64,000 bases of DNA from Auanema rhodensis (taxonomy: Eukaryota; Animalia; Nematoda): the NCBI GenBank assembly GCA_964057225.1, contig OZ059898.1, forward strand, positions 13,392,001 through 13,456,000, in the 5' to 3' direction. The notes beneath the pieces are model-generated. The model saw only the letters and a list, made by a program, of their open reading frames with translations, was not told the DNA's origin and made no database searches. Every line of letters starts with the position of its first letter. The stretch's first letter is position 1. Positions 32,559 to 34,701 of the stretch are shown piece by piece. The position numbers and the translations under genes are program-made.

Positions 32559-32954
32559 CAGGCTTCATCTTTCAATGTCATATTTTGCCCTACGTCATTC
32601 TCTTTTCTCGAATCTGTTTCTCGTGTTTATTTGATGTCAAGAGAATATTAGTATCAAAATATCAATACTGAACCTTTTTATGTATAAGATTCACATATTT
32701 AGTATAATTATTCCTAATCTCAAGTTGTAGCAATAATAGATATTTTGCCGTTCTAACGCACCTTTTCGGCCATCCTCAATTTTAGCCATTTTAAGGCTTA
32801 TTAGCATTGATTTTGTGTCTCAACTCTTCGAAAATGTGTGATTTTCAACATTTTTCAAAAATGATCAAAATGTCGAAAAGCGCTACTTTGAAAAAGTGGT
32901 CGAAATTAGATTGGTCGAAAAGATCGAAATATTGCCCTAACAATTTTGAAAAAA

Positions 32955-33129
32955 ATGAAACTTAATAAATCTAAGATTCGATGAATACCTAAAGTCGTCA
33001 ACAAATCAAGATCTCCATGCTTTAGTAAAAATATTGGAAATCAAGAATTTCCGGGGAATCTTCATGAGAGACATCCTTCCAGATAAGATACTACCAAAAG
33101 TAATCAACGATGCCTTGTCTCGTCTTTAG
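32955..33129 (+). pseudogene. Truncated N-terminal fragment resembling the Maverick/Polinton adenain-type cysteine protease
   Basis: Frame 32980-33129 reads DEYLKSSTNQDLHALVKILEIKNFRGIFMRDILPDKILPKVINDALSRL*, matching the recalled Polinton PRO N-terminal pattern (S/T)N.DL....K.L.I.NFRG(V/I)FMRD.LP. The nearest ATGs (32955, 32981) are out of frame, and the catalytic GTHW region is missing. Confidence 0.75.
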
Positions 33130-33250
33130 TATTTGCCAAGCAGTGAATAAATACATCATTTATTGTTATAATTATAAAATATATACGTTCGAACAGTCTA
33201 AACTAAAACAAAAATTTCAATTTTGTACAAACTTAAAATAAACAGAAACA

Positions 33251-33326
33251 AAGATTGTTGTTTCGAGATCGAAGAAGACATGAGGGACTTCGAGCATGTC
33301 TCCTTCGATCTCGAAACAATGATCTT
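33251..33326. repeat. 32-bp stem / 12-nt loop hairpin directly after the protease stop
   Basis: aagattgttgtttcgagatcgaagaagacatg (33251-33282) versus catgtctccttcgatctcgaaacaatgatctt (33295-33326): 29 of 32 pairs Watson-Crick. Confidence 0.9.
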
Positions 33327-33329
33327 CGT

Positions 33330-34386
33330 TCATGACGGCCCGTACTGAAACATAACAATGAAATCAATTCTTTAAATATATTGTGACACTATTGTGTTTT
33401 TATATCACAAAAGAAGGATAAAGAATTGAATTGAATTGAATTAACTTACATCGTTGGCTGGACTAATGGACCCCGACAAGAGCAGAATAACTTCGGAACC
33501 GATCATTCTGGAGTCGGGGTGATGGTCAGCAATTTCTCCCACAGACATATTTTTATGATCCTTGAAGTCCTTCTTTCCAATTGCGATTCCAAGGAAGTAG
33601 CCATCAACAGAGAAGATTCCGGATCCGCTATCACCCAGTTTCCCGTGTGCAGTTCCGAAGGCGAAGAGACCTAAATAAAACAATTGATATCTATAATTAA
33701 GAAATTATACTTACCTTGTCTATGAGAAACGATGCCACCCTTCCAACTAGGTATGCGATCAGAAGTGATGCCCAGTTGCATGCAAGTCTGGCCACCAAAC
33801 ATGCACTCCGACGTTCGCGGATAGTTTGAAAACTCACCCGAGAGCAGTTCGAAAATGGTTACATCGTAGAGTTCGGAAATGGCCAGAACACGAGTCTGAA
33901 AAGCAGCTTAAAGGACGAGTAAATCAAATATCTGGGATACAAAATGGAAGCTAGAAGATGGTGGAGGACGACCAGTACTAGTGCAGGTAATTTTATTTTT
34001 CATTAATTTTTTTAATCTGGGGAAGCACAGATCTGCAGATGAAAGTTATGGTGTCGTGGGTGTGCCAGGAAGTCTACGACGTCGATTCGGGTGCGCGTTT
34101 ATGACGCCTTGTATAGGAAAGCGCCCGTTTTTTTGAATTTCCATTCTGTTGACTTCTGCTTTGAAATTTTTTATAATTGGAAAAGAAAAACCTCGAATTG
34201 GATCGCCGGATTACGCAGATTGTATAAGATCATTTTCTCATCCCGCTTGAGTTGCGAGTGTGGGCCGTGGTGGAACGATACCGCGTGAGTTTTGTTGAAT
34301 GCCACGACACATGTATGAGTGAGCGAGTCTGGCTTCGAGGTGGTGTAGATTGACTTTACGAGGTTATCCGCTGTTGCTCTCTCCAT
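33330..34386 (-). CDS. Chymotrypsin-fold serine protease without signal peptide, WOSP-like, ~203 aa. Exons 34192-34386, 33715-33895, 33450-33670, 33330-33344
   Basis: All splice sites are GT-AG and in phase. Putative triad: AVSFHHGPH (His), ELYDVTIF (Asp), GKLGDSGSGIF (Ser). If the last intron is retained, the protein stops at 33441. Confidence 0.82.
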
Positions 34387-34701
34387 AGGCTAGCTAAACA
34401 GAATTTCTTTATAAATTACAAGGATATTTACACTTGTAAAGTTAAAAAATAAATAGTTTTACATGATAGAAGAAGAGAGAAGGTAGGTAAAGTTGTTATC
34501 AAACTAAAAGTTGAGGAGAAATCAACAATGAGCGGATGGGAAATCAAGCACGACAAGAACTGCATAGGAACATCAAGACTCTTCCCTTTTCACAAAAGTT
34601 AGAATGTGGTGGAAAAATGCGATTTTGGCAGTTTCTCGCCTTCCCGAAAATTCAAAAAAGCGTGCGCTTACCCTGAACAAGGTGTGATAAACGTTCAACT
34701 C

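Follow-up and report, generated by a model that had tools for sequence, protein, structure and literature searches.

An HtrA-like protease gene and the relic of a Maverick-type maturation protease between inverted repeats of the nematode Auanema rhodensis

Nematode Mavericks have been shown to move HtrA-like proteases between species, one of which became the toxin MSFT-1 (bioRxiv 10.1101/2022.07.12.499685; PMC10680173). We describe a 1.96-kb cassette from the nematode Auanema rhodensis in which an intact gene coding for an HtrA-like serine protease and the decayed start of an adenain-like maturation protease of Maverick/Polinton type are found in convergent orientation. The cassette (32736-34698) lies in a stretch of 64,000 nucleotides (contig OZ059898.1 of assembly GCA_964057225.1, positions 13,392,001 to 13,456,000), hereafter the window, to which all positions refer unless another locus is named. 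It is composed of two unrelated homology blocks and forms the single-copy spacer between the two arms of an inverted repeat. With a probability of roughly 0.55, we consider it to be a composite of two Maverick-associated DNA pieces, placed where a very young complex rearrangement has its first junction.

The association of HtrA-like nematode proteases with Maverick remains is already published, and this locus adds an example to it without being a new phenomenon. What it has of its own is a short protease family devoid of the ubiquitin-like domain, together with a near-perfect inverted triplication around the cassette.

An intact gene for a short HtrA-like protease

The protease gene (33330-34386, minus strand) is composed of four exons (34386-34192, 33895-33715, 33670-33450 and 33344-33330), which are connected by GT..AG splice sites of nematode type (acceptors TTTTCAG, donors GTAAGT) and encode an open reading frame (ORF) of 203 residues. 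A variant with three exons, ending two residues earlier, is possible; the four-exon form is favoured because the relatives end in the same ...Y-G/V-P-S/T motif. All three catalytic residues are present, i.e., His at about position 40, Asp 76 and Ser 140, the latter within GDSGS, and the N-terminus is charged and, by inspection, lacks a signal-like hydrophobic stretch. Only one copy of the gene is found within the window. An intact, signal-less, four-exon protease of trypsin fold had already been proposed on the basis of the nucleotide sequence, without database searches (hereafter the sequence-only reading), a proposal which is supported by the gene model, by the relatives and by the introns shared with them.

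The protease has been characterized locally, through its single exons and its relatives, and it is from the relatives that the domain and fold matches come. With the three protease exons, no Pfam family was matched, and exon 3 gave only weak matches in the PDB, to S1B proteases around GDSGSGIF. A full HMMER search with the same exon across 1.84 billion representatives retrieved only 25 clusters, mostly of ~200-220 residues. The family is small, with proteins of ~205 residues and a patchy distribution, and its named members are exclusively from nematodes (Caenorhabditis japonica, C. nigoni, C. bovis, C. sp. 36, C. auriculariae and Auanema). Residues 1-203 of the window protease align end to end with residues 1-205 of P0028, from C. 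auriculariae, with 72% identity; an end-to-end alignment was also obtained with P0002 (52% identity). The exon lengths of the C. auriculariae gene (195/181/227/15 nt) correspond to those of the window gene (195/181/221/15 nt), which indicates that the three introns are common to both. In an alignment of ten family members, no variation is seen in the His, the Asp or the GDSG motif, all of which the window protein possesses.

Eight of the ten relatives reach the Pfam family Trypsin_2, and four the alphavirus capsid protease family. The latter (Peptidase S3, PDB 1dyl) also provided the best match of the family profile among PDB sequences, with an E-value of 3e-5 over ~100 positions that include the catalytic Ser, and it shares a compact chymotrypsin fold; however, the match falls under the Pfam cut-off, there is no capsid context, and structural searches favour HtrA. 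Indeed, the AlphaFold model of P0028 (pLDDT 79) has as best matches the protease domains of HtrA1/2, DegS, DegP and MamO (e.g., PDB 8sdp, 2r3u, 5hm9), with TM-scores of 0.60-0.67 and E-values of ~3e-8. In contrast to HtrA, DegS and DegP, the window protease has no PDZ domain, signal or transmembrane segment, identity is ~15%, and named hits are restricted to nematodes. Collectively, the Trypsin_2 and HtrA-fold matches of the relatives and the full-length alignment with them support that the window gene codes for a compact, PDZ-less and signal-less HtrA-like serine protease.

Comparison with the C. auriculariae gene gave a ratio of nonsynonymous to synonymous substitution rates (dN/dS) of 0.33, with a dS of 0.43, and the protease is therefore under purifying selection. 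Transcription of the family is suggested by one member, whose 987-nt contig, assembled from a sequencing run, has no introns. From these sequence data we infer that the window protease would be expressed and active.

The window and the C. auriculariae locus resemble each other only in the gene unit (33208-34644), which shows ~80% nucleotide identity including 258 nt upstream of the gene. Within intron 2, 37 of 44 nt match, and introns and 5' flank are overall about 75-84% identical, while the flanks of the two loci show no synteny. The conserved 5' region (34387-34644, minus strand) is 75-77% identical to the sequence upstream of the C. auriculariae gene. These ~260 nt can be aligned in at least four species, including C. 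bovis and, in two pieces, C. sp. 36, in which the region is interrupted by a retroelement; the upstream sequence of these two species still aligns, although their proteins are only 47-52% identical to the window protease. The counterparts are located at 9774-10000 of locus L001, 7217-7423 and 9843-9996 of L004 (C. sp. 36) and ~9880-10000 of L003 (C. bovis). Directly 5' of the protease ATG, an acceptor-like site is found, TTTAG in the window and TTTAG/TTCAG across the aligned species, and the conserved region probably functions as promoter and outron, judging from its position and conservation. A motif resembling a heat-shock element in this region was dropped from consideration, as the relatives do not keep it.

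Downstream, the 3' flank (33208-33329, minus strand) has weak homology to the 3' flank of L001. It includes a near-perfect hairpin of ~35 bp (33247-33330, minus strand), which begins directly after the stop codon, in the 3' untranslated region, and has a predicted fold of -51 kcal/mol (z -8.2). The full hairpin was not found in L001 or L002, and an Rfam scan of 28500-39800 gave no match. Since the C. auriculariae gene has only one recognizable half, the hairpin arose by local inverted duplication. It is possible that it serves as a source of double-stranded RNA.

Two side observations concern the gene and its relatives. Intron 1 (33910-34157) is ~250 nt longer than in C. auriculariae, and within the additional sequence the final bases of the cassette (34648-34693) recur as an inverted copy of 46 nt with 83% identity. 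The original bases fall outside the homology with C. auriculariae, and the copy in intron 1 is possibly a small repeat element. In C. bovis (L003 5600-23032), a tandem duplication is present whose unit comprises the protease gene and a gene of 195 or 323 residues with a C-terminal membrane anchor, and one of the protease copies has a mariner-like transposase ORF inside an intron. These neighbours of 195 and 323 residues are not proteases.

A relic of a Maverick-type maturation protease

The second block of the cassette comprises an open stretch on the plus strand (32959-33126), which contains NFRGIFMRDILP, and its 5' flank (32736-32958, plus strand). The sequence-only reading had regarded this convergent, frameshifted fragment as the relic of a virus-like maturation protease and had made this view depend on a similarity to the PRO protein of Polintons. 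Such similarity was found by tblastn: among 120 members of an adenain-like family described below, 89 match the window at 32992-33087, with a best E-value of 1.2e-7. They do so with their residues ~14-50 only, and in none of the frames did the 120 members reveal further parts of the protein. The relic keeps the N-terminal ~45 codons, i.e., about the first third of the gene, with one frame loss at the start and one premature stop, and the C-terminal two-thirds, in which all catalytic residues were located, are gone. When assessed for the adenain fold and active site, it extends over residues ~5-50 and holds none of the four catalytic residues. The window fragment is a dead relic and not a protease. 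An ATG-initiated stretch in C. sp. 36 (L004 3407-3565) shares 58% identity with it; in the pairwise alignment, the two copies remain homologous through their 5' flanks, to the first bases of the cassette.

Direct searches with the relic had little to offer. Pfam returned nothing useful with pieces of 31 and 56 residues, PHROGs and IMG/VR gave no match, and the PDB sequence search yielded chance matches only, whether the query was the relic by itself or a profile of two sequences. A metagenome scan, on the other hand, retrieved two contigs with complete ORFs of 156-159 residues, both of which fall into a protein family with at least 1697 members (136-159 residues). As these full-length relatives have no Pfam or PDB sequence match either, the family was identified solely by structure prediction and fold search, together with gene neighbourhood. 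Its members have invariant His, Asp, Gln and Cys residues in the order found in adenain. The family model (pLDDT 87) matches in the PDB the adenovirus protease (1nln, E 1e-6), pS273R from African swine fever virus, poxvirus I7L and Ulp1, and, among viral models, the adenain of an adintovirus (TM-score 0.69), a MELD-virus protease and Sputnik V9.

The genomic context points in the same direction. On metagenome contigs (L006-L009 and L012), the family gene has as neighbours genes for a double-jelly-roll capsid protein and an A32-like packaging ATPase; on L012, a contig of 3.2 Mb which carries both, an integrase with rve and chromo domains is encoded directly upstream of the family gene. Capsid, ATPase and integrase constitute the morphogenesis and integration set of Mavericks/Polintons. 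Because fold, active site and gene neighbours of the family all fit, the window fragment is assigned as the relic of a Maverick/Polinton maturation protease. The family shares its fold, residue order and neighbours with adenain (Peptidase C5) and with the PRO proteins of Mavericks/Polintons, adintoviruses and virophages, but is shorter (136-159 residues) and is not recognized by Pfam. A protein family which escapes Pfam is thereby shown to be an adenain-like protease of Polinton-type elements.

Relationship to the WOSP proteases

WOSPs, first named WASPs, are HtrA-like proteases of nematodes which lack a PDZ domain (Widen et al.; bioRxiv 10.1101/2022.07.12.499685; PMC10680173), and 20% of them have a Maverick gene within 6 kb (bioRxiv 10.1101/2022.07.12.499685). 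The sequence-only reading had called the window protease WOSP-like, which holds in part. WOSPs and the window protease have in common an HtrA-like fold, the His/Asp/Ser triad, introns, a restriction to nematodes and a patchy distribution. The window protein ends ~60 residues past the catalytic Ser and the only Pfam domain of its relatives is Trypsin_2, so that, like WOSPs, it has no PDZ domain. As for some WOSPs, a core Maverick component lies within 6 kb, in this case the PRO-like relic, located ~200 nt from the 3' end of the protease gene.

Other features differ. The window protease has 203 residues, compared with ~325 for WOSPs. While residues 1-83 of MSFT-1 form an N-terminal ubiquitin-like domain (bioRxiv 10.1101/2022.07.12.499685), the window protein begins ~38 residues before the catalytic His and has no such domain. 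Of ten aligned relatives, nine share this initial Met or start a few residues downstream of it; the tenth, P0012, has 13 extra N-terminal residues, too few for a ubiquitin-like domain of ~83 residues. Within the cassette, only 312 nt lie 5' of the protease gene, and they correspond to the conserved non-coding region described above. In addition, a Glu following the catalytic Ser (E273 of Cpli-WOSP-2) has been described as highly conserved in WOSPs (bioRxiv 10.1101/2022.07.12.499685). In an alignment of 22 columns surrounding the catalytic Ser, this position is occupied by Gly in the window protein; of ten relatives, six have Gly, three Ala and one Arg. Finally, the window protease is located outside any recognizable Maverick.

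The family searches returned no protein of the WOSP type, of 325 residues; a search with the family profile retrieved six proteins, none of WOSP type, although the word index limits this search and its blank is not evidence. The window protease is thus WOSP-like in kind, but its membership is unproven, and neither of two defining WOSP features, the ubiquitin-like N-terminal domain and the conserved Glu, was found. If this protease family were to represent a distinct clade of cargo, the known cargo repertoire of Mavericks would be widened.

An inverted duplication and triplication around the cassette

The sequence-only reading had described a single-copy segment of ~2 kb. The cassette indeed has no second copy within the window, but its repeat-bounded setting had been missed. 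On the left, the cassette is bounded by the position where flank copies 1 and 3 cease to match, and on the right by the start of arm A'. Arm A (29130-32561, plus strand) contains no convincing coding ORF, and arm A' (34699-38130, minus strand) is its reverse complement; over ~3430 nt, the two differ by a single mismatch and a 1-nt indel in a homopolymer. Between arm A and the cassette lies segment B (32562-32735). A third, direct copy (38129-39210, plus strand), followed by unique sequence, reproduces the last 904 nt of A (31658-32561) and segment B. It is 100% identical over the 904 nt, and its differences, a 2-bp indel and a few substitutions, are all found in the last ~45 nt before the junction. 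The region 29130-31657 is therefore present twice, once inverted; 31658-32561 three times, the middle copy being inverted; and 32562-32735 twice.

The cassette ends are not inverted repeats, no target-site duplication is present at the outer arm ends, and no transposase is found between or near the arms. These absences argue against both the integration of a Maverick and a transposon with long terminal repeats. The proposal of the sequence-only reading that a Maverick fragment had recently landed here is not sustained: the window holds neither terminal repeats nor target-site duplication, nor integrase, polymerase or capsid genes, and the cassette is instead the spacer of an inverted duplication/triplication. 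The evidence favours two explanations for this setting: an artefact of the assembly, or a replication-based rearrangement of very recent date.

Rearrangements of the duplication-inverted triplication-duplication type (DUP-TRP/INV-DUP), known from human genetics, are attributed to template switching during replication. The window resembles them in having a triplicated segment with an inverted middle copy and duplicated flanks, in the presence of foreign sequence at one junction, and in the small changes clustered beside a junction. It differs in scale, with kilobases in place of hundreds of kilobases, and in an unusually long junction insert (1.96 kb) which holds a whole gene. If real, this inverted triplication with a complete gene at its junction would be a clean example of a small-scale complex rearrangement.

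Origin of the cassette

In the reading that we favour, the first piece of the cassette would be a gene unit of ~1.4 kb, complete and probably functional, which runs from the conserved 5' region through the four exons to a short 3' flank, and its product would be a stand-alone, intracellular, PDZ-less HtrA-like serine protease of the nematode family of ~205 residues. The second piece would be what is left of a Maverick/Polinton maturation protease of adenain-like type, now dead, with its 5' flank and first ~45 codons. The rearrangement would have occurred in non-coding DNA and produced a 3.4-kb inverted duplication, with three copies (direct, inverted, direct) of its last 0.9 kb and two of the 0.17 kb that follow, i.e., the duplication/inverted-triplication pattern expected from replication template switching. 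The cassette may have reached the junction as a copy of sequence present elsewhere in the genome, or it may be an older local remnant at the site of the rearrangement; its ultimate origin would be Maverick cargo.

The genome of C. sp. 36 speaks for this reading, with the same relic 6.4 kb from its protease gene. Several observations weigh against it. 1) The relic is the only Maverick gene in the window, which also lacks terminal inverted repeats and target-site duplications: integrase, polymerase, capsid and packaging ATPase genes are all absent from it, it has no ORF of at least 140 residues, and in a tblastx comparison with four virus-like loci the PRO relic was the sole match. 2) Most of the family loci examined are located amid housekeeping genes or retroelements, without a called Maverick gene, and five of seven have no Maverick trace. 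3) In C. sp. 36, relic and protease gene have a different relative orientation. Because the arrangement differs in C. sp. 36, the tie between relic and protease is an association and not a conserved linkage; the association of the protease with Maverick debris is repeated but loose. 4) The 22-column alignment mentioned above was obtained with hhalign between the family profile and only 57 residues of Cpli-WASP-2, taken from the supplement of the paper, and has 45% identity and a probability of 64%. 5) One mismatch per 3.4 kb of arm is equally compatible with mis-assembly. 6) Composition is host-like and says nothing on a foreign origin. As the sequence-only reading had supposed, the protease exons are richer in GC and CpG than their flanks, with a GC content of 0.49 and a CpG observed/expected ratio of 1.05, compared with 0.31 and 0.42 for the arms and 0.33 and 0.77 for the whole window. 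However, host exons in the window have a GC content of 0.42-0.49, and the GC content at third codon positions (GC3) is 0.55 in the protease exons and 0.54 in an exon of a 14-3-3 gene. As host exons are similar, the contrast is one of coding versus non-coding sequence and constitutes no foreign signature.

The strongest competitor, itself rather unlikely, is that of an ordinary host gene, long resident and belonging to a small nematode family, beside which unrelated transposon debris, the adenain-like piece, happens to lie. A past as Maverick cargo would then have no role at this locus. Purifying selection on the protease, the strong conservation of its 5' region across species, GC and GC3 values like those of host exons and the five of seven family loci amid housekeeping genes and retroelements all agree with such a view. 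It accounts poorly for the recurrence of the relic, which lies within 0.2 kb of the protease gene here, at 6.4 kb in C. sp. 36 and, as a marginal match (E 1e-3), 6 kb from the gene in a third genome, since such relics should be rare. It also has to contend with the patchy distribution of the family and with a nearest relative which is non-syntenic and yet about 75-84% identical in introns and 5' flank.

Somewhat less probable again is that the inverted-repeat setting is an assembly artefact derived from a fold-back or chimeric long read. The true locus would then consist of the cassette beside one copy of the flank, and the identities of the two genes would be unaffected. Near-perfect arms and third copy are typical of artefactual palindromes; the presence of three distinct, clean junctions is harder to reconcile with this origin, as is the clustering of small changes beside one of them. 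Clustering of small changes at junctions is a described feature of replication-based rearrangements.

A bolder version of the reading that we favour, which we regard as doubtful, is that the ~1.4-kb unit is a Maverick cargo module moving between Caenorhabditis lineages, and that the window copy is recent, active and possibly selfish, its arrival or a Maverick-linked break having triggered the triplication. A recent arrival is suggested by the identity of about 75-84% in introns and 5' flank to the non-syntenic C. auriculariae copy. Nevertheless, the cassette shows no sign yet of recent horizontal transfer, the closest relative found being non-syntenic and having 72% protein identity and a dS of 0.43.

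Capture of the cassette by a non-autonomous DNA transposon of foldback or Pack-MULE-like type, with the arms as its terminal inverted repeats, is improbable. Such an element would explain long, near-identical inverted repeats around a captured-looking gene, and a precedent exists in msft-1/tlpr-1, captured by a Mutator-like element (MULE) with 870-bp repeats (bioRxiv 10.1101/2022.07.12.499685). It is at odds not only with the missing target-site duplication and transposase noted above, but also with the right flank, which itself repeats internal arm sequence, and with the fact that the arm sequence has no further repeats in the window. Least probable of all is that the protease, like MSFT-1, acts as a toxin within a toxin-antidote element, or another kind of selfish element, that is still active: the catalytic triad is intact, the fold class is the same and the locus is structurally unstable and possibly young, but the cassette holds no second conserved ORF as a partner, the relatives in other species are single genes amid housekeeping genes, and no sign of toxin activity has emerged so far.

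Neighbouring host genes

The 14-3-3 gene of the window (~22100-23400, minus strand) contains two similar, adjacent versions of one exon (22172-22465 and 22353-22625), which represent alternative exons or a partial duplication. Two exon-like ORFs, at 19532-19837 and 51157-51576, resemble an aminotransferase and a KH-domain protein, respectively, and correspond to ordinary flanking host genes.

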